A DNA stretch of 63,986 nucleotides, filler included, from Octopus bimaculoides (GCF_001194135.2; 6 parts of 6 records of this genome joined end to end with filler, not necessarily neighbours in it); one strand, 5' to 3'. Shown: positions 37,138 to 54,626, counted from the first letter of the whole stretch. Numbers and translations are program-made. Notes: generated from the sequence alone by a model not told the origin.

Positions 37138-40018
37138 AAGAATTAAAAAGAAGCTGAAAAATTGATACAGAGATGATTCGAACCTCGTACCCATTGCCTA
37201 CCGGTTGATCACGTGGATTGGGTTCAGTATTTTGTGCATTTCTATTGTTTTAAATGGTTTGGTTGCTTAATGTTGTTTTAAGAAGGTTGTCCATGATTAT
37301 TACGTTGTTTTGCTTAGTTTTAATTAATGTCATTTTAATCTTCGCCGTTAACACGGCAACTATACACATACACACACATATATATATAAAACACAAACAA
37401 ACGACAACCCGGATTGATTAGCGAAGTCATCCAATCAGAATAGGACAAACCGAACGCATTGACATCCTGCGTGAAGTGATTTAACCACAAGGATAAAAAA
37501 AAAAAGGTGTATATGACCAAAAACGACAACCAGATATTATAGTGAAACATATGAATGAAAATAGAGTGACCAACAAATTAGCCAATGAAACGATGGCAAC
37601 CACTGAGAATGTCTTAATAAACAGCGGTTATAAAACTGCCAACGAAAAATTATAACACAAACAAAATAATGAAGCTGATCTAATATGTATACACACACAC
37701 GCACTATATATATATATATATATATATATATNNNNNNNNNNNNNNNNNNNNNNNNNNNNNNNNNNNNNNNNNNNNNNNNNNNNNNNNNNNNNNNNNNNNN
37801 NNNNNNNNNNNNNNNNNNNNNNNNNNNNNNNNNNNNNNNNNNNNNNNNNNNNNNNNNNNNNNNNNNNNNNNNNNNNNNNNNNNNNNNNNNNNNNNNNNNN
37901 NNNNNNNNNNNNNNNNNNNNNNNNNNNNNNNNNNNNNNNNNNNNNNNNNNNNNNNNNNNNNNNNNNNNNNNNNNNNNNNNNNNNNNNNNNNNNNNNNNNN
38001 NNNNNNNNNNNNNNNNNNNNNNNNNNNNNNNNNNNNNNNNNNNNNNNNNNNNNNNNNNNNNTCTATCTATCTATCTATCTATATATATATATATATATAT
38101 GTATATAAATGGAGTTAAACGCAGTTGTTATTCAAATTCTTTTACTTCCGACACATGTTTCAAAGATATCACTGATATTATTCCAAAGAAATAAAGTGGT
38201 GTAAAACAATGTAATCTTCTCTTCAGGGAAATGAAGAAATGAAACTCGTCAATAAGACATTTTAACAGAAAATGATGGATATGTATAGTGATTAAACTTT
38301 AGTTCATATAAGTGATATCTATCATTATATATAATTTAAACATTAATTTTCTTCTTACATTTCATATTTACTAGATATATCTTTTTCCAATTCTATACGG
38401 TTTTATTTAATATACATATAGTTATATACCTCTCATTTATTTGTTTTTTTTTCTTTCCTTTACCCCTCCTCTTTCTATAGGCTACCTTTGACGTTATATC
38501 CTCTAACGTTTTTTGGAAACAAACTTAATAGCGTTCAGTGAATCATATCATATCCCTATGAAAAACAATCACACAATATCAATCTATGGATAATATATAC
38601 AACAGAACCCCCATACATAAAGAAACTAAGGACCATTTAATAAGATTAACTCCACGAGAACTAGAAATTCCTTGAAGGACAACTTAGAACCCTGAGAACG
38701 CAAGATACGAAAGGTTCACAGTCAAGAAATGCATCAAACATATATATCCATCATCAGCTGCCTAACGTACATCATTATGGTTTCGACACTTGGTAGTACC
38801 ATTCACTTCAGCGGTATCAGCAGCGTTAAAAACATAAACAATGCCAAGAAATTAATTGACAAGAGACCAGTGTGAAACGTTAGCGCAGTATATCAATTAC
38901 ATCTATACCTGCTTCATGTTGCAAATACAAACATCAAACCTCAAACATAAATGGTTACATACCTATAGTTAAGTACACATACACATTATATAAATATTTG
39001 TAGCGATTCTGTCGCAAACGGAAAGAACCACAATTAAAGTAAGCAACACAATACACCAAGTAAAAAGTAGAATATTTTATTTAATGAGAAAGTCTTATTC
39101 TGTTTCAATCATAGAGAATTCATTCGAAAGTGGAACAGCTGTTACGATTATTAACTGCATATATTTTAATCCTTAAACGGCGGACAACAACAACTGATGT
39201 TTCAAAAAAATGTGTAAAAAGATACGGCTTTCATCACTTCATGCCCGAATCGTCAACTTCGTCAAATGCTTCTAAGCGTTCGCTGCTCTTTTCGGTGGGG
39301 GAAATGGAATCGCAATTGGACGATTACACAGCGATGAAGAAAAATTTTTACTTTCCTTCATCATCATGTAAGGCGGACTATGATGAAAATGAAGATGAGG
39401 ATAATGACGATGATGCTGTATCTAGATAGCATAGAAGAAAGTGATGCTTCCATAAGTTCTGGGTAGAAAAAGTGCATCGATCTTTCCCCATTCATTTGAC
39501 AACAACAATGTAGGAATCTCAAATGAATTTATGCTCATAGCGAATGCAAAAGAAAAAGAATATTTTACGGCACCTTTTGACAATGTAACTGTAAATTTTA
39601 TTGCGTAAGACGTTAACAGTTATTGAAGTTTTAGTAATTATTTAAAATGAAAATAAGTGTAAAAATTACCCCAAAGGAAAATATATTTTTTGTCCGTTTG
39701 GTACACCCATTCAGTCAGCCCTTCTCGCCATAAAAATGTTAATACTTTAACTCCTGTGGTTTATTTACAGATTTATTGCTTAGATTATTATTTCTTCCTT
39801 ATCTTATTTATATAAGTGTAGCCAACATGACTACCTACATAGGCCAGCTACGCATTTAGCTTGAAGTTGTATGATTGTGCATTAGTATATGATGAAAGTA
39901 CACACGTAGACTGTAAATTCACTCTCACATTATATCTCTTATCCGGTACTCCGGATAAGAGAGAGAATATAGATTGTATAAATGGACATATGTATAAATC
40001 TCACTTGTTACATTTCAG

Positions 40019-43049: not shown

Positions 43050-43214
43050 AATATCCGAGCCAGATCCAAAACGGATTTTTTTAGGGGTCGGCACCCAAAA
43101 AATTAAGACATAAGTCAATTAAAGAAATTTTTTTTTAATATTTATAGAGGGAGGGCAATCGGAGGCCGTCGGGGACCGCCTGAAGGATGCTTGGGACCGC
43201 GGTTGAGAACCGCT
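43050..43214. mobile_element. One-ended hAT/Charlie-like MITE remnant
   Basis: Ends in GGGACCGCGGTTGAGAACCGCT, a typical Charlie-type terminus. The other TIR was not found. Confidence 0.5.
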
Positions 43215-43381
43215 CTTTTCTGCATTGTAGTCCATTTAATTCATACAACGTTACAACAACCAGATGAACTTAAAAATAACAAAATATGTCAGCTAGACTT
43301 AATGAACAGACGACCTAAGTTTTTGCATCTACGAAGCCGTTTTATCGTAATCAGTCGGCAGCCATGTCTGAAACAGAACGG

Positions 43382-43433
<52 letters not shown>

Positions 43434-43547
43434 GTCTCGCTCATATTTTGTTGCTCTTGTTCTGTTTTGTGTTTTAAAAAGCTTTTTTTTTTGGTTCTTT
43501 TCTGCTTCCGTACCACCGATGTTGCAGCTATAAAGATTGTTATTATC

Positions 43548-43583
<36 letters not shown>

Positions 43584-44707
43584 CCTCTTCGTTTTTTGTG
43601 ATTTTGATGGATATTTTTATGTTAGTCTTTGTTATTATCGTCGTCGTTGCCTTTCCTCCTCCTTTTCCTCCACCTCTTTCCTTTTGAAATCGTTAGAAAA
43701 AATACCTTGTGGTATTTCTTTTGGCACTTCATTTTTTGAGTTGAAATTACTCTCGGTAAACTTTACCTTTCATCCTTCCAGAATTGGTAAAAATAAGACC
43801 CCAGACAAGGACCGGGGTGGGGTGGGTTTGGTGTAAAACGCCCGACACCATCCCCTCTCAATTTCTGACCTTTTTCTTCGTAAGAAATCAAAGGTCAGCA
43901 GATTGATATAGAATGGTTATTTATTCCAGTTTGTGCGTTCTGAGTTCCAATTACAGGAAAGTCGATTTTACCTTTCGTCCTGATCGATAAAATAAAGTAA
44001 CAATCATTTGCTGAGATCGATATAATTGACCTCCCCTTCTGGCTTTGCTTTTTCGTCTACTGAAGAAATTTCCAACGCGATGGCGTAGCGGAACCGTTAA
44101 GTCGTTGGGCAAAATGCCATGCGATGTTTAATATCGGGTCCTTATGATATATTTTTAAGTTCAAATCGTATCGGCTTCAACTGAATCTTAACGTTCAGTT
44201 AATATCCGTACATTAATACCAGTAATATACTGCGTCTTCGACTCAGTAGACTCTATATCTTCACCTACAGAAAGGTTCCTGTATTCTTTTCTACTCTAGG
44301 AACAAGGCCCGAAATATTGCCGGGAGGGGGCCAGTCGAATACATCGACCCAGTGCGTAACTGGTACTTAATTTATTGGACTCAGAACGCAAAGACAGACG
44401 AAATACCACTAAGCATTTCGCCCGGCGTGCTAACGATTCTTATTACTTTATTGCCCACAAGGGGCTAAACATAGAGGGGACAAACACGAACAGACCACCA
44501 TCACTAGTACCACCATCACTACAACCACTTACCATCACCACCACCACCACCATCAGCATCATCCTCGCTAACAACCCACCACGGTCACGGCCACCACATT
44601 ACCACTCCCACCACTACCCCCCTACTAACATCATCACCATCACCGCCACCACTACCACCACCACCACCACCACCACCACCACTTCATGTTCTACGTTATG
44701 ATTACAG

Positions 44708-44989: not shown

Positions 44990-45712
44990 TTCTTATTTTG
45001 AAAATGGAGCTGGTTTCTAATAAAGATACAAAGCCCCGATTCTGGAATGGAGATAACGAAAACTACGTCGCATTTTAAACCTGAGAAAAGTCTTGCAGAG
45101 TTTTACTGTTCCACTTACAGATCGTATTTGTGATGTGCGGATCAGTTGGTTGATATCTCTTTCTGAAAATCCAAGCTGATTCAGACTGATAGTTAGGCAT
45201 TTACTGATAAAACCAAATGCGCCTATTATTATTGGTGTAAATGTTAATCTGTAATCCGGATATAGAAGCTGAAGGTTTCGAAGCAGTTGTCCGTGGTTAT
45301 CTCCCTTCTCTTTAATTTTCAAGACAACAATATCCGGCCTGTTATGCTTACATTTGATAGATGTTTTGATGGCAATGTTCCGTCAGTTTTCCTTGTGCTG
45401 GTATTTGTGTACGTATTCAATAACAGTGGGGATTCTCTACAATTATTCCAGAACGGTCTTTTTTTCCGAAATGGCATTGTATATTGTTTTTGCGACAACG
45501 TCACGTCTTATAGGGAGGTGGTACCTTGATGGCATTTTGGGGCAGATGCTAATCACATGTATAATGTCTTCTACAGAAATATCACATGATCTATATTTTT
45601 GGTTGCATCTTGGAACTCCAAGAGCTTCACTGTCTCTTTTGTTGATTAGATATTTAGCAGTAATCTCCTGTTCTTGGATTGCAAGTGCACAGAGTAGAAA
45701 AGAATATATAGA
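44990..45712 (-). mobile_element. R4/Dong-like LINE 3' end (CCHC plus restriction-like endonuclease)
   Basis: Peptides AIQEQEITAKYL, VEDIIHVISICPKMPSRYHLPIRRDVVAK and FTPIIIGAFG...GTVKLCKTFL. Confidence 0.85.
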
Positions 45713-45744: not shown

Positions 45745-45945
45745 CTAGGGCCAAGGTCCGAAATTTTGTGGGAGGGCCAGTCGATTAGATCGATCTTAGT
45801 ATGCAACTGGTACTTAATTTATCGACCCCGAAAGGATGAAAGGCAAAGTCGACCTCAGCGGAATTTGAACTCAGAACGTAACGGCAGACGAAATATCGCT
45901 AAGCATTTCACCAGCGTGCTAACGTTTCTGCCGGCTCATCGCCTT
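45745..45945 (-). mobile_element. tRNA-derived SINE family B (central GCCTTTCATCCTTTCGGGGTCGATAAA domain)
   Basis: B box GAGTTCAAATTCC plus a conserved central domain. Other copies lie near 13450-13540, 31085-31237, 35600-35755, 40170-40280, 43690-44050, 44290-44440, 51760-51940 and 53630-53720. Confidence 0.88.
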
Positions 45946-45957
45946 CCCATATATATC

Positions 45958-46340: not shown

Positions 46341-46584
46341 CTACAGTTGTATTACACTGCTCCTTTCCACCTTTTCTCTACTGCAACCTATCACCTCTTC
46401 TTTCCTTAATCCTTTTCTATTCCTTTCACCTTCAATCCAAACTGATATTTAACATCAACCATGCCTCTGTCTTTTCTCACCATTCACTACATTCACCTCG
46501 ACCCCAAATTCTAACCATCCGTTGCTCTCCTCTCACACTCTCATGAACTTCCTCATCCACTTTTCCCAATCCTCTTTTCTTTTG

Positions 46585-46952
46585 TTTCTGTCATTAGACT
46601 GTGGCCATGCTGAGGCATCACCTTGAAGAATTTTTAGTCAAATGAATCGACCCTAGTACGTTTTTTTAAGCCTGGTATTTATTCTATCAGTTTTTTTTCC
46701 CAAACTGCTAAGTTAAGGGGATGTAAGTATACCAACACAGGTTGTCAAGCACTGGTGTAAGACAAACACAAAGACACACACACGCATATACAAAGGGCTT
46801 CTTTCTGTTTCTGTCTACCATATCAACTCACAAGGTTTTGGTCACTCTGAGGCTATAGAAGAGGACACTTGCCCAAGGTGCCATGCAGTGGGACTGAACC
46901 CAGAACCATGTAGCTTGGAAGCAAGCTTCTTACCACACAGTCACACCTGTCT
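46585..46952 (-). mobile_element. Diverged SINE family A copy
   Basis: Colinear with 26970-27382, with many substitutions. Confidence 0.8.
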
Positions 46953-48671: not shown

Positions 48672-49460
48672 TATGGAGGCACAGGCATTGCTGTGTGGTA
48701 AGAAGCTTGCTTCCCCCGCAGGTGGCCGCTGAGGTAGTTACCCGTACCACCATTAACACGGTCAAGGCCACCTGCAATGAATTGAGTTATTTATACTTTA
48801 CTAACGAAGTAGATTACAACATGGACTCTTGGCTGATGGCAGTATCAGGTATGATGATGGAGAATTATTGATTGTAAATTGATTATTGACTGTAAATTAA
48901 TTGTAACCATAGTGAACAAAGGTTTTCGAGGGGTTACCGATCGGTGGGCATCAGTGTCCCTCTCATTTTTCATCTATGTCATCCTCATTTTGTCATTAAT
49001 GTTTCTGTCCAGCCCTAGCTTCTGCTAATCTTTGTAATGCCTAAATGGCAAATTTCATGAAATATAGAAGCTTGCTTCCCAACCACAGAGTTCTGGGTTC
49101 AGTCCCACTCCGTGGCACTTTGGGCAAGTGTCTTCTACTATAGCTTCCAACCAAACAAAACCTTATGAATGATTTTGGTACACAGAAACCAAATGAAGCC
49201 CATTGTATATATATATATATATATATATATTATTTGTGTGTGTGTGTGTGTCCTTGTGTCTATGTTTATATTCCCACCAGCATCACCACTTGACAACTGC
49301 TACTGGTGTGTTTATGTCCCATTAACTTAGCAGTTCAGTAAAAGAGACTGATAGAATAAGTACCAGGCTTTAAAAAATAAGTCCTAGCGTTGATTTACTT
49401 GACTAAGATTCTTAAAGGTGGTGCTCCAGCATGGCAACAGTCTAATGAGTAAAAAGATAA
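48672..49460 (+). mobile_element. Diverged SINE family A copy split by the 48716-49065 insert
   Basis: The head lies at 48672-48715 and the body resumes at 49066 and continues to GGTGCTCCAGCATGGC near 49430. Confidence 0.8.
48716..49065 (+). mobile_element. 350-bp insert with 15-bp TSD inside a SINE; probable 5'-truncated CR1/L2-like LINE 3' end
   Basis: AGAAGCTTGCTTCCC is duplicated at 48701-48715 and 49066-49080. AEVVTRTTINTVK resembles the CR1 C-terminal LPxEVVxAxxxNxFK motif. A TGCC-TAAAT-GGCA stem-loop lies near the 3' end. Confidence 0.6.
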
Positions 49461-49517
49461 GATTATGATGATGACGACGATAATGATGAATACTTTCATT
49501 GTCCTTTACACAAATAG

Positions 49518-49637
49518 TTTGCCATTACATGGGTGAAGATCACAATGCAGGACCCATTCCTGACACAACATGTATATGTCAACTAAATGGCACTGTTACT
49601 TGTGGAAATAAGCTTTCAGAAGAAGTGGATGACCCAG
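49518..49637 (+). CDS. 120-nt phase 1/1 exon, 4-Cys VWC/FN1-like module 1
   Basis: Acceptor ctttacacaaatag|TT and donor G|gtaagc. Translates as CHYMGEDHNAGPIPDTTCICQLNGTVTCGNKLSEEVDDP. Confidence 0.8.
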
Positions 49638-49742
49638 GTAAGCACTCAAAGTTATCAAATTGCACACATTGGTCTCAACCAAAAGAGACAAGAAGGGGAC
49701 AAGCTGACTGAATTGTTAGCACTTCAAACTGAAATACCTATC

Positions 49743-50014
49743 TGTTATATGTACTGTTGGACTGTTGGATTTGTTTGTTGTTCGTTTGAGGTCCTGTGTT
49801 TCAATGTAGTTCGTCTGAGGTCCCTGTTTTGTTGTTGTTTTGTGTGACTGTCAAAGTAAAAGGTTATTGATATATATGGCGAGGACATGATTCTTGTTTA
49901 TTAATAACGAACATTCGGTGAGTGTGTTTTGTATGTAATTAGTAAATAAATGTAATAACTAAGTTGTACAACTCGTTGTCTTTTCTCTGCGAGTCCCCCG
50001 AGAGGAATACAACA
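49743..50014 (+). mobile_element. Solo LTR, 272 bp, 5-bp TSD CTATC
   Basis: TGT...ACA termini, internal AATAAA, and CTATC on both sides (49738-49742, 50015-50019). It is homologous to 56981-57244. Confidence 0.88.
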
Positions 50015-50194
50015 CTATCAGCATTTAATAAAGTTCTATATTTAAGAGATGAGGAATTATGTACATTATTTACATTTGACAGATATTTGTCCTCATCTTG
50101 TTTGTTGTTAACACAAGAGTGTAGTGGGTGCTTTTTACGTGCCACCGGCACAAGGGGCCATAGGAGCTGGCTTTGACCACAATCGGATGGTGCT

Positions 50195-50875
50195 TTTTAT
50201 GTGCTGTTTCACAAAATTTTTCAAATTCACAAGACACAAATTGTGTTCCATTGTCAGGTACTATCTTGTCTGGGATGCCACATCTTGCAAATAAATCATG
50301 TAAAAACTTCATCACAACTGAGGAGGTTGGTTTTGTACACTTTCAAATTTCAGACCATTTCAACAAACTATCGGCTACAACTACGTAGTTGTTGGCACTC
50401 CGTCACTTATGACGTCGAGGGTTCCAGTTGATCCGATCAACAGAACAGCCTGCTCGTGAAATTAACGTGCAAGTGGCTGAGCACTCCACAGACACGTGTA
50501 CCCTTAACGTAGTTCTCGGGGATATTCAGCGTGACACAGTGTGACAAGGCTGACCTTTTGAATTACAGGCACAACAGAAACAGGAAGTAAGAGTGAGAGA
50601 AAGTTGCGGTGAAAGAGTACAGCAGGGTTTGCCACCATCCCCTGCTGGAGCCTCGTGGAGCTTTTAGGTGTTTTCATTCAATAAACACTCACAATGCCCG
50701 GTCTAGGAATCGAAACTGCGATCCTATGACTGCGAGTCCGCTGCCCTAACCACTGGGCCATTGTGCCTCCACAACTAAATAGTAGGAACCGTTTAAATGA
50801 TCAGCAAAATCCATGTGTGTTCTCAACCACAGAACATCTACTTTTGAACAAGGTTTACTTTTATCCTGGGCAATT
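50195..50875 (-). mobile_element. Ty3/Gypsy integrase fragment interrupted by a SINE
   Basis: With the SINE removed it reads WLRTHMDFADHLNGSYYLVVADSLLKWSEI..TSSVVMKFLHDLFARCGIPDKIVPDNGTQFVSCEFEKFC, the rve core. Confidence 0.88.
50384..50770 (-). mobile_element. SINE family C, full length, TSD ACAACTA
   Basis: ACAACTA at 50377-50383 and 50771-50777. It is inserted in the Gypsy integrase fragment. Confidence 0.9.
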
Positions 50876-50889
50876 GTTTTATTTCTGGA

Positions 50890-51700
50890 TGGTCTTCATA
50901 CCAGTTCTTAGGGTGTGAGATGCCATAGTGGCGGCATATCATCCATGCAAGTATTGGCCAACGTGATCATGCCTGGTTTTATATTCTGTAAGGGCAAGGA
51001 CTGAGCAACCAACAACAATGTGGTCAATACTCTCAAGATTGTCATTGCAGAGTCTACAATTTGAGTCTACCTCATTGTGTGTGACATTAGCTTGATACTT
51101 CCAGGTGAGGGGAGACTCTGGTCTCTTGCTACTAAGATGAATCCTTCTGTTTCAGCTTTCAAACCAACACTCTTCAGCCACTGATGGGTTCTTCTTACAA
51201 CTACATCAGCTCATTTGGGGCATTGCCCATGAAATGGTTTTTCTTGCTACAATCTTGATATTTCCTTCAAGCTCTCCTGTTTGGCTTTTGTTTTACACGG
51301 TTTACTGCCTTAGTGGGTGGTGTCTCCTCCTTATCATAATCAGGGAGGTTAAGCTCCGGTCTGTATTTATATGCCTCCTTTGAGATTGAGTGCAGTTTCT
51401 TACCCTGTTCGTGTTGCCTTACCAGCTGTATCATCGAGACGGTGTTACTTTGGATGTACATTTGAAGTCCTATCGTGGTCGTTTTACAGGACATTTCAAG
51501 CTGGATTAGACCTCCAGACCTCCGGCGCCTCCCTTTCATGGGAGATAGAAACTGTGGACGTTTGATTTTGGGTGGTGCATCCTGTTTAGTGTGAGCAGTT
51601 TTCTGGTCTTTATGTCCATATGCTGGAAATCATTCAGATTCCAACTGATGACATTAAAGCCAGACTGGACAACTGGTACCACCAGGCAGTTTATAGCTGC
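50890..51700 (-). mobile_element. R4/Dong-like non-LTR retrotransposon fragment (post-RT region and CCHC finger)
   Basis: Decayed peptides KPFHGQ, WLKSVGLKAETEGFILVARDQSL and CRLCNDNLESIDHIVVGCSVLALTEYKTRHDHV. Confidence 0.85.
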
Positions 51701-51944
51701 AATTCTATTCTGAGAGTTCAGTTCAGTATTATTCTGATATGTCTACAATATTCTTTCCTGATCTCTCAGCGACATTTCATCCATCCCTATGTTCTGAGTT
51801 CAAATTCCATCAAAGTCAACCTTGCTTTCATCCTTATGGGGTCGATAAACTGAGCATCAGTGAAATCCTGGGGTCAATGTGATTGACTTACCCCACTCCC
51901 TCCAAATTTCAGACCTTGGGCCTATAGTAGAAAGGATTGATCGT

Positions 51945-52355
51945 TGTCACAGCACCAGCTATCTGGCTTCCGTGCCAGGGGAATGTAAATAGCACCATTT
52001 GAGCGTGATCGTTACCAATGTCGCCTTCCTGGCACTTGTGCCAGTGGCACGTGAAAAGACTTTCGAGCGAGTTCGTTGCCAGTACCGCTGGACTGGCTCC
52101 CATGCAGGTGGCACGTAAAATACACCATTTTGAGTGTGACCGTTGCCAGTACCTCCTGACTGGCCTTCGTGCCAGTGGCATGTAAAAGCACCCACTACAC
52201 TCTCGGAGTGGTTGGCGTTAGGAAGGGCATCCAGCTGTAGAAACTCTGCCAAATCAGATTGGAGCCTGGTGTAGCCATCTGGTTTCACCAGTCCTCAGTC
52301 AAATCGTCCAACCCATGCTAGCATGGAAAGCGGACGTTAAACGATGATGATGATG
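51945..52355 (+). mobile_element. Retroposon with four ~65-nt internal repeats, V-domain-like motif and (ATG)n tail
   Basis: Tandem double-hairpin units, then GGTTGGCGTTAGGAAGGGCATCCAGCTGTAGAAA, then GTTAAACGATGATGATG. Related tails occur near 47230-47340 and 53020-53100. Confidence 0.7.
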
Positions 52356-53094
52356 ATGGTGAATGCCTCTGGAAAAACCAGTAATCTGGAAAGGAATTGG
52401 AACTGAAGATTCCAGAGAATCGATGTGGTTCCTGCATATTCATTTTCCTTTGATTTTCTCATAATACTGTCTGTTATGAAATACCAAAGAGTCTCATCGT
52501 ACTTACATGACCACAAGAACCGATCAAACCTAACAACCAACCCCAATAGCAACAGAAAGAAGAACTACAGCAACCAATACTCTGAGTCTCCACATCAAGA
52601 AGGCTCAGAGCTAGAAGAGAGAAGGAATACTAGCTCTTTACTGACTACTCTTACTGACTTTGACATTGAATATCATTCTGGTATTAGCATTTTCAACCTT
52701 CGTCTATTTGCATTAGCCTTCATCTTTCTCTGACCTACACCTTCAATCCGACTTAAACTAAAGCCCAGTGTAAAGGTCAAGGTATGGGTTAGGCTCAACT
52801 TTAGCATAGCTTTAAACCGAAACCAAACCATGGCCGTTGAAACTTGCTCTAATCATCACCCGTCTCTCACCTTCACCGTAAACCCTCTTTTGAGCCATAT
52901 TCTTATCTTCAGTTTGAGTCCTGCTCTGGTTTGTCTTGAACCTTACCTTATCTTCATACTAGCAATGTGAAGACATGGTTGGTCTTGGCAAAGTATTGGC
53001 CTTGCTTTGAAAGATGAAAGTTGGTGATAATAAGGGCATGCAGCTGTAGAAATTCTGCCGCAATGGATTTCATACAGGCATGGAAAGCAGACAT

Positions 53095-54391
53095 GATGAT
53101 AAGGAGGAGGAGGTGGGGAGCATAAGAGTATAACACAATTGTATTAATGCATATACAGTGAAATAGGTACAGTGCATGGCAGAGCCCTACAAATTCCCAC
53201 CAACACTCAGTGTGTAAAGTGGCAGTCTTATACAGCAGACCCAAAAATACTGCCTTCTGTAAAAGTATTACCTGGAGCAGAATTTGCTAGTGTGTTATTT
53301 GTGTGTGTGTGTGTGTTTCTTTTGAGTCAAATTTTGACTACCTTTATTTCTTTCTGAACCTTTCAATCACTGTACATCCCAATCATTAATTTATTATAGA
53401 TGATTGTCTTTACAAAGGAAAGTTCTATGGAGTCGGGCCTCTTGAGGGAGGAAACTGTACTTGTACAGAGACTGGTTATGTTAATTGTGTGGAAACGCCT
53501 CAAGATGACCCAATTCCTGGTAAGTAATTGAGTTTTTCTCTCCATCTGATGTTCTAACACTTCTGCCAGGCTGGTACCTTAATAAAAATGGTTATCATTT
53601 CTACAACTGACACAAAGCCAAAATGTTGGTAGAAAGTGGGTTGGTCGATTACAACAATCCCAGTGATCAACTGGTACTAATGAAAGGCAAAGTCGACACT
53701 TGCAGAAACTGAACTGAAGACATGAAGAGACACACATATATATATACATGTTTGATGGACTTCTTTAAGGATGGGTGGGAGAAGCTGTAAAGAAGATAGG
53801 ATGGTTGTGAAAGGGTGCCAGAGTAAGACCTGAAAGAACACGGAGAGGGGATGAGGAAAGTTGATGCAGATGAGGAGGATACCTTATATAATGGTGGCTG
53901 GACATAGCTGGGAAGAAGATAAGATGGTTGCAAAGGGGTGTCAGATGGAACAAGGAGAGGGGATAAGGACATAAATACAACAATGAGCGTTAGATAAGAT
54001 ATGTCACATGATGAGGAGGAGGAGGTAGGGTAGAGGGGGATGAGGGGGTGCATAAGAGTAGAACATAACTTTATTAATGCATGTACAGTGCATGGCAGAG
54101 CCCTACAGATTCCCACCAACACTCAGTGTGTAAACTGACAGTCTTATACAGCAGACCCAAAAATGCAACCTTCCATAAAAGCATTGCCTGGTGCAGAATT
54201 TGCTAATGTGTTATTCGTGTGTGTGTGTGTGTGTGTGTGTTTCTTTTATGAGTCAAATTATGACTACCTTTATTTCTGGACCTTTCAATCACTGTACATC
54301 CCAATCGTTAATTTATTATAGATGATTGTTTTTACAAAAAAGAAAGCCCTATGGAGTCGGGCCTATTCCAGGAGAAAACTGTAATTGTACA
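53095..54391 (+). repeat. Local tandem duplication: 53095-53470 vs 54009-54391
   Basis: The shared intron block GCATGGCAGAGCCCTACA..CCCACCAACACTCAGTGTGTAAA..GCAGAATTTGCTA..CAATCACTGTACATCCCAATC runs into the module exon in both copies. Confidence 0.92.
53400..53519 (+). CDS. 120-nt phase 1/1 exon, 4-Cys VWC/FN1-like module 2
   Basis: Acceptor ttattatag|AT and donor G|gtaagt. Translates as DCLYKGKFYGVGPLEGGNCTCTETGYVNCVETPQDDPIP. Length, phase and Cys spacing are the same as module 1. Confidence 0.85.
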
Positions 54392-54394
54392 TGA
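54322..54394 (+). pseudogene. Frameshifted, truncated duplicate of the module-2 exon (pseudo-exon)
   Basis: Same acceptor context as module 2. Reads DCFYK, then a +2 A insertion, then RKPYGVGPIPGENCNCT and TGA. Homology stops there and no donor is present. Confidence 0.8.
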
Positions 54395-54519
54395 GCAAAC
54401 ACAAAAATCAAGTCCGCAGACAACTTCGTCTATAAAACACTGGAACGTGCTAGTAGCGTTCCGCAAACCGAAACTCATGTATAAAAACTCAAAACAACCA
54501 AATCATTAATTTATTATAG

Positions 54520-54626
54520 GTTACTGTATTTACGATGGTGAGTCCCATGAAGTCGGCCCTATTCGGGGGGGAAGCTGTAATTGTACAGAGGGTGGTGAAG
54601 TTGTGTGTAAGGAAAAAGTTGAGTAA
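54520..54626 (+). CDS. Probable terminal exon, 4-Cys module 3, ending in TAA
   Basis: Acceptor ttattatag|GT, phase 1. Translates as YCIYDGESHEVGPIRGGSCNCTEGGEVVCKEKVE*. An alternative phase-1 donor T|gtaagg after 54606 cannot be excluded. Confidence 0.78.

Follow-up and report, generated by a model that had tools for sequence, protein, structure and literature searches.

Part of a probable unannotated Octopus gene encoding strings of four-cysteine modules, with one module exon duplicated and its older copy in decay

Does the DNA at positions 49518-54626 of a repeat-rich octopus locus belong to a working gene, and, if it does, what kind of protein does that gene encode? The question was raised by an initial annotation, made from the sequence alone, of a window of 63,986 nucleotides from Octopus bimaculoides (GCF_001194135.2; the window is the whole stretch of DNA analysed, six parts joined end to end with filler). 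That annotation reported an unrecognised gene segment of three phase-compatible exons encoding tandem four-cysteine modules, and it described these as half-VWC modules of a small, secreted, possibly lineage-specific protein. Here we show that the first two exons, E1 and E2, are expressed and spliced together, and that the third, E3, is a decaying species-specific duplicate. The piece of the window that holds them is very likely an internal part of an unannotated octopus gene, one of an Octopus-restricted family whose products are probably secreted strings of four-cysteine modules. The octopus annotation apparently lacks this gene, which is real and transcribed, and with it comes the definition of a compact family of cysteine modules that has to date been seen in no genus but Octopus.

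The splicing of E1 to E2 is documented by assembled RNA. In an index search, words of E1, and exon words only, were present in four small RNA runs of O. bimaculoides. A contig of run X25 (805 nt, depth 310) carries E1 at contig positions 302-423 and E2 at 422-544, which gives exactly the 49637/53400 junction that the initial annotation had proposed for checking in RNA. The same junction occurs in shorter contigs of X18 and X20, a contig of X19 covers E1, and RNA coverage in X25, X18, X19 and X20 ends at the edges of E1. Expression is strongly run-specific, falling from the depth seen in X25 to zero in three deep raw RNA runs. At position 49599 the X25 contig has T for C (Thr to Ile in E1), a within-species polymorphism.

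The transcript does not begin or end with these two exons. Upstream of E1 the X25 contig extends for at least 301 nt and reads ...CACAGCTACGTTGATAGATAACTCCACTAAAG, in frame ...TATLIDNSTK, with a phase-1 junction; after 53519 it continues with ATGTATATACAAAG..., read as G-ATGTATATACAAAGAACAAAGAATACCATT and giving Gly-CIYKEQRIP. These first residues of the next exon match the module motif (compare CLYEGIFYPIGP). Both the upstream and the downstream RNA exon fragments were searched for in the window and neither is present; the gene thus runs past both ends of the piece, unless its upstream exon hides in a 330-nt assembly gap (a run of N) at 37732-38061. Neither E1 nor E2 occurs in any of about 15 billion proteins (zero matches below 1e-10), and the gene is therefore apparently unannotated in O. 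bimaculoides; a word-indexed protein search with the spliced 115-aa product returned no candidate. The segment thus keeps its standing as an unrecognised part of a gene that is spliced in RNA. The description of its product as small is not upheld, given at least one more module downstream, the upstream extension and relatives of 392-436 aa.

What the exons encode is a module of about 30 residues with the consensus C-x-Y-x-G-x5-G-P-I-x4-C-x-C-x7-C. A strict regular expression for this motif, run in all six frames over 37068-57966, matches exactly three times, in E1, E2 and E3 and always on the plus strand, against 0 matches in 200 first-order Markov shuffles, so that the count is far above chance expectation. 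Within the piece, tblastn with all modules finds no copy besides these three and E2', a fourth module copy that the initial annotation had missed. Each of the three exons is preceded by an AG acceptor, and E1 and E2 both have a GT donor (GTAAG follows). The three-exon proposal therefore holds for the coordinates, the frames, the acceptors, the 120-nt length of E1 and E2 and their donors, and fails for E3, which has no usable donor. That the modules lie on symmetric phase-1 exons is borne out by the exons of the window and by the O. vulgaris relative described next over its whole length.

To which family does the product belong? A HMMER scan of 1.84 billion representative sequences gave one genuine match (phmmer E=7.7e-6, query residues 2-115), the hypothetical O. 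vulgaris protein CAI9741643.1 (A0AA36BWR9; 392 aa; P0002 in our lists), which UniRef names 'Kielin/chordin-like protein'. We discarded the other three of the four matches, leucine-rich-repeat proteins of bacteria that had matched through 'GPIPDLS'. By word-indexed search, the only relative of the O. vulgaris protein is isoform X2 of O. sinensis LOC115225789 (P0005), an uncharacterised protein of 436 aa, and the same kind of search with an alignment of 12 modules found nothing. Matches in protein searches are thus confined to Octopus, in keeping with the proposal of a lineage-specific protein, and a literature search found no paper that mentions LOC115225789, A0AA36BWR9 or CAI9741643. Both relatives begin with MNFVFILSTLLVICGLRYAGG, followed by an N-terminal CxxCxC module and then four or five GP modules such as FCLHGGERFPVGPIPNTNCNCTANTSVVC. 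In the gene for the O. vulgaris protein the majority of exon junctions are in phase 1, with a separate exon for every module. Across the 12 aligned modules the C, G-P, C-x-C and C positions are invariant.

The window gene is a member of this uncharacterised Octopus GP-module family. It shares with the two relatives the four-cysteine GP module C-x4-G-x3-P-V-G-P-I-P-x-T-x-C-x-C-x7-C, at 35-48% identity per module, as well as the arrangement of one module per phase-1 exon and the acidic or proline-containing linkers. It differs from them in having G/A/E-V/A-G-P for P-V-G-P, in linkers and a first loop that are highly diverged, and in the extra, partly decayed exon copies of O. bimaculoides. The N-terminus of both relatives is hydrophobic and signal-like; by analogy with them the protein of the window gene is probably secreted, which makes that part of the initial annotation plausible.

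The third exon has a different history from the first two. E3 is 73% identical to E2, but at the donor position, where E2 reads G/GTAAGTAATTGAG, E3 reads G-TTGAGTAATTGAG: the ancestral GT is now TT at 54619-54620. Since the donor is lost, the frame reads through, and the stop of E3 (TAA at 54624-54626) is former intron sequence (gtaagTAA). Words of E3 are in no indexed RNA run, whereas those of E1 are in four, and no RNA contig covers 54474-54662. The three deep raw RNA runs are uninformative on E3, because their depth is zero on E2 too. The proposed junction 53519/54520 is unsupported and gives way to a different one, the abundant X25 transcript leaving E2 for an exon outside the piece.

Upstream of E3, repeat analysis shows that the unit 53115-53550, which includes E2, recurs at 54045-54391 with 87-94% identity; its 5' flank duplication corresponds to repeat families D5, D7, D18 and D19. 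The exon part of this second copy is E2', which carries a 2-nt insertion (frameshift) near 54336 and is truncated at 54391, after ...TGTAATTGTACA. It is followed by a 107-nt insert with a multicopy repeat, where many differing contigs pile up in DNA runs; this insert is absent from a genomic contig of a sister species, species B. A short acceptor tract lies between the insert and E3, and inverted copies of a satellite unit bracket the rearranged region (Table 1).

Table 1. Coordinates of the module exons and of the rearranged region around them (positions in the window)
Feature	Position	Strand	Description
E1	49518-49637	+	120 nt, phase-1/phase-1 module exon, VCHYMGEDHNAGPIPDTTCICQLNGTVTCGNKLSEEVDDP, RNA-covered
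Intron 1	49638-53399	+	GT...AG, 3762 nt; RNA contigs join 49637 to 53400; SINE-like repeats inside
5' flank unit of E2	53115-53399	+	duplicated at 54045-54321, 87-94% identical
E2	53400-53519	+	120 nt, phase-1/phase-1 module exon, DDCLYKGKFYGVGPLEGGNCTCTETGYVNCVETPQDDPIP, donor G/GTAAGT, RNA-covered
Satellite unit, inverted copy	53794-53940	-	paired with 54717-54863
Second copy of 5' flank unit	54045-54321	+	includes acceptor tract
E2'	54322-54391	+	pseudo-exon copy of first 68 nt of E2, 85% identical
Insert	54392-54498		107 nt, interrupts ancestral exon; multicopy repeat about 54404-54503
E3	54520-54626	+	duplicate module exon, GYCIYDGESHEVGPIRGGSCNCTEGGEVVCKEKVE then stop; donor lost, RNA absent
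Ancestral 3' flank of exon, then satellite unit	54627-54863	+	homologous in species B and O. vulgaris

The same region can be compared in two other octopuses. In introns, species B is about 5% different from O. bimaculoides. Its genomic DNA (run X28) contains E1, whose upstream junction is phase 1, and its RNA (X26, X27) splices E1 directly to ATGATTGTTATTACGAAGGACTGTACTATG... The species B genomic contig contains the 5' flank and the start of E2', skips 54392-54600, and resumes in the 3' part and flank of E3; it has no 2-nt insertion, and with G at 54619 and A at 54621 it keeps a canonical G/GTAAGT donor. Rebuilt from this contig, the single exon of species B is intact, 96 nt long, and encodes DDCYYEGLYYGVGPIQGAKCNCTERGLVCEEG. 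In the same species a C>G difference at 49511 makes a new AG, which the RNA uses, so that E1 is 6 nt longer there (Glu-Ile). O. vulgaris likewise has a single exon in its 92-kb locus L001, at L001:89884-89976 (module match 89883-89981; DGCSYDNVDYPVGPFPGGICIC...); its 5' flank is of the E2 type, its 3' flank of the E3 type, and its donor is intact, ACG/GTAAGT. With the flanks of that one exon, the E2/E2' 5' flank and the E3 3' flank share 74-78% identity, and the satellite unit, present in O. vulgaris as 123 nt x 16.7 copies with 98% matches, lies directly downstream of it (L001 90106-92158). Because species B and O. vulgaris each have a single intact exon, it was in O. bimaculoides alone that the exon was duplicated, E2' cut short and the donor of E3 lost, and E2 is the copy in use there.

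Module exons have also come and gone elsewhere in the O. vulgaris locus: a degenerate copy, DTCFHVLCYSVGPIPDTECNC, lies at L001 71995-72084, and two near-identical tandem module exons lie at L001 80430-80534 and 81964-82155. The annotated O. vulgaris gene model stops before two more module exons at 83113 and 89883.

The reading that we favour may be put as follows. The mRNA enters from an exon upstream of the piece, uses E1 and then E2, and leaves for a downstream module exon. In O. bimaculoides an ancestral single exon at the E2 position has been duplicated and rearranged, with E2 taking over and the original site being split into E2' (frameshifted and truncated) and E3 (dead donor). The protein would be a string of four-cysteine, beta-rich modules, one per symmetric phase-1 exon, joined by flexible, acidic, proline-containing linkers; each module would hold two disulfides and fold like the first subdomain of VWC. 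Such a product could be a strongly tissue-restricted extracellular binding or matrix protein under diversifying selection, in which specificity would reside in the linkers and the variable first loop, and exon birth and death would change the number of modules.

Divergence between O. bimaculoides and species B adds to this picture. In E1, 16 of 120 nt differ, against about 5 of 111 in the flanking intron (Fisher p=0.022), so the exon diverges three times faster than the intron beside it. Ten of its 39 residues are changed, with a proportion of nonsynonymous differences (pN) of 0.146 and of synonymous differences (pS) of 0.104. The changes lie in the first loop and the linker, while all cysteines and GPIPDTTCICQLNG are unchanged, a pattern suggestive of a fixed scaffold on which selection is relaxed or diversifying.

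Are the modules then related to VWC? In the order and spacing of the first cysteine, the glycine, the aromatic residue, C-x-C, G-x-V and the last cysteine they resemble the first half of VWC domains (PF00093; chordin, crossveinless-2, NELL, collagen IIA). A VWC domain has ten cysteines and the window modules have four; the second subdomain with CCxxC is absent throughout, the CxxCxC of VWC is reduced to CxC in the GP modules, and the conserved Trp region is replaced by GP. We compared the 12-module profile by hhalign with five VWC domains verified from Protein Data Bank (PDB) chains (collagen IIA, chordin, NELL2), and obtained a match with P=0.0016, a probability of 16% and a score of 18.5, which 0 of 300 column shuffles reached (shuffle mean 9.6 +/- 2.0). 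In the register of this match C1 pairs with C1, the G and aromatic positions correspond, C-x-C falls on the last two cysteines of CxxCxC, and C4 falls on C5 of VWC. The N-terminal module of the O. sinensis protein matches the same half of VWC at P=1.3e-4 with a probability of 54%.

Searches for domains and structures gave less. Pfam searches with the window product and the O. vulgaris protein returned only noise, with no VWC, SVWC or MSMB match at E<=10, and the window product has no match to Pfam fn1; sequence searches of the PDB, whether with the product, the profile of the modules or the O. sinensis protein, gave noise or nothing. AlphaFold2 predicts the module as all-beta, with a predicted local distance difference test (pLDDT) score of about 90 over residues 1-30, to which DSSP assigns four three-residue strands (2-4, 7-9, 19-21, 27-29) and a two-residue bridge; in the two-module model the linker is disordered. 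Foldseek with the single-module model (pLDDT 82) finds no VWC among its matches, all at E of at least 4.8, and with the two-module model (pLDDT 67) nothing significant, the best being E=1.4. The matches at noise level include NELL2 (E=1.6), CV2 VWC1 (E=4.4), the FN1 module FN1-11 (2ec3, E=7.4) and VWF D'D3 (within E=1.4-7.4). FN1 modules are likewise small and beta-structured, of about this size, with four cysteines paired 1-3 and 2-4 in a 2+3-stranded fold, and the exons that encode them are typically symmetric and phase 1; no sequence or structure match to them is significant. SVWC proteins have 8 cysteines and one domain per protein. In arthropods these VWC derivatives, Vago among them, are small, secreted and rich in cysteine; they have expanded within lineages and often evolve fast (PMC13115929, PMC11515477). 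The window protein resembles them in being cysteine-rich and differs in taxon, in lacking a Pfam SVWC match and in its multi-module architecture. As a description of the sequence, half-VWC is reasonable but unproven: the initial proposal fits a weak in-register profile match to the first subdomain, and membership in VWC or FN1 is not supported.

Other accounts of the locus have to be weighed against these data. The modules might be true VWC (or FN1) domains, with the gene acting as a kielin/chordin-type regulator of bone morphogenetic proteins, as is implied by the name that UniRef gives the O. vulgaris protein and as the weak profile similarity in the correct register, together with CV2 VWC1, NELL2 and an FN1 module among the Foldseek noise, would allow. 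We consider this unlikely with four cysteines per module, no CxxCxC in the window modules, no second subdomain, no Pfam VWC match even at the permissive threshold, hhalign probabilities of 16-54% and a best Foldseek E of 1.4. It is quite improbable, too, that the gene ends in E1, E2 and E3, a short 3' end of three exons whose coding sequence stops in E3 (...KEKVE stop). E3 does retain a good acceptor, its four cysteines and an uninterrupted reading frame, and contig data show presence only, so that they would miss E3 if it served now and then as an alternative last exon. The dominant transcript nevertheless joins E2 to another exon, words of E3 are missing from every indexed RNA run, its stop is old intron sequence exposed by the species-specific GT-to-TT change, and no canonical AATAAA occurs in about 130 nt after that stop.

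There is a negligible probability that the exons are open frames arisen by chance or belong to a transposable element. The introns are repeat-rich, and intron 1 contains a partial match to the integrase core (Pfam rve) at 50070-50315 (E=1.4e-4, below the gathering score), which is a retroelement fragment; yet this fragment lies inside the intron and on the minus strand, opposite to the exons. The exons themselves are single-copy, their motif count exceeds chance, RNA is spliced at their exact edges in two species, and they have positional homologues in a multi-exon O. vulgaris gene whose product has a signal-like N-terminus. The initial annotation had named missing spliced reads together with missing orthologous exons in other octopods, or a match to a transposable-element or well-described protein family, as grounds for giving the gene up; what we find is E1 spliced to E2 and orthologous exons in two octopuses, and these rule out an origin in a transposable element or in chance open frames.

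Some points weigh against the gene-family reading that we prefer. The full transcript of the O. bimaculoides gene is only partly recovered, and what is known is an internal part. The VWC-like fold and the disulfide pattern are inferences, since no Pfam, PDB-sequence or Foldseek match is significant. The ratio of nonsynonymous to synonymous change (dN/dS) is based on one 39-codon exon, for which the species B sequence was rebuilt from listed differences. That the gene is the orthologue of LOC115225789 and not a tandem paralogue rests on the flank homology of one exon.

A more far-reaching proposal, which we put forward only tentatively and think rather doubtful, is that an Octopus-specific family has reduced VWC to a free-standing four-cysteine mini-module, with birth and death of single exons and positive selection on the first loop and linkers. 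Because expression is very high in one low-complexity transcriptome, the protein might be a product of a secretory gland (saliva or venom, mucus, adhesive), of the egg coat or of a matrix. Abundant 'kielin/chordin-like' VWC proteins have been reported from the argonaut eggcase (bioRxiv 10.1101/2021.07.10.451900), a lead only. If the mini-module proposal were true, the family would be a new cephalopod effector scaffold, and the minimal module could help to show how VWC-type domains get reduced. No long-standing question hinges on an octopus module gene. What the locus does offer is exon-level turnover in progress, one exon having been duplicated, the new copy used and the old one broken, and a coding sequence that diverges faster than the adjacent intron; families of this kind are candidate lineage-specific secreted effectors.

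The surrounding DNA is rich in repeats. Repeats resembling short interspersed nuclear elements (SINE-like) lie at 46572-46949, 49065-49457, 55256-55587, 45779-45957, 55991-56156 and 56217-56378, and each has 10-20 copies of 70-90% identity within the O. vulgaris locus of 92 kb. At 49321-49446 and 54188-54293 every run, RNA or DNA, has very high depth, which reflects such repeats and (TG)n tracts. Two related open frames on the minus strand, 45017-45322 and 55763-55978, share ...P(I/V)(I/V)IGA(F/L)G...(K/L)..L, have no Pfam match, and look like the tails of one unclassified mobile-element protein. At 43191-43836, long microsatellites of GTT/TGC type produce spurious poly-Val and poly-Cys open frames.

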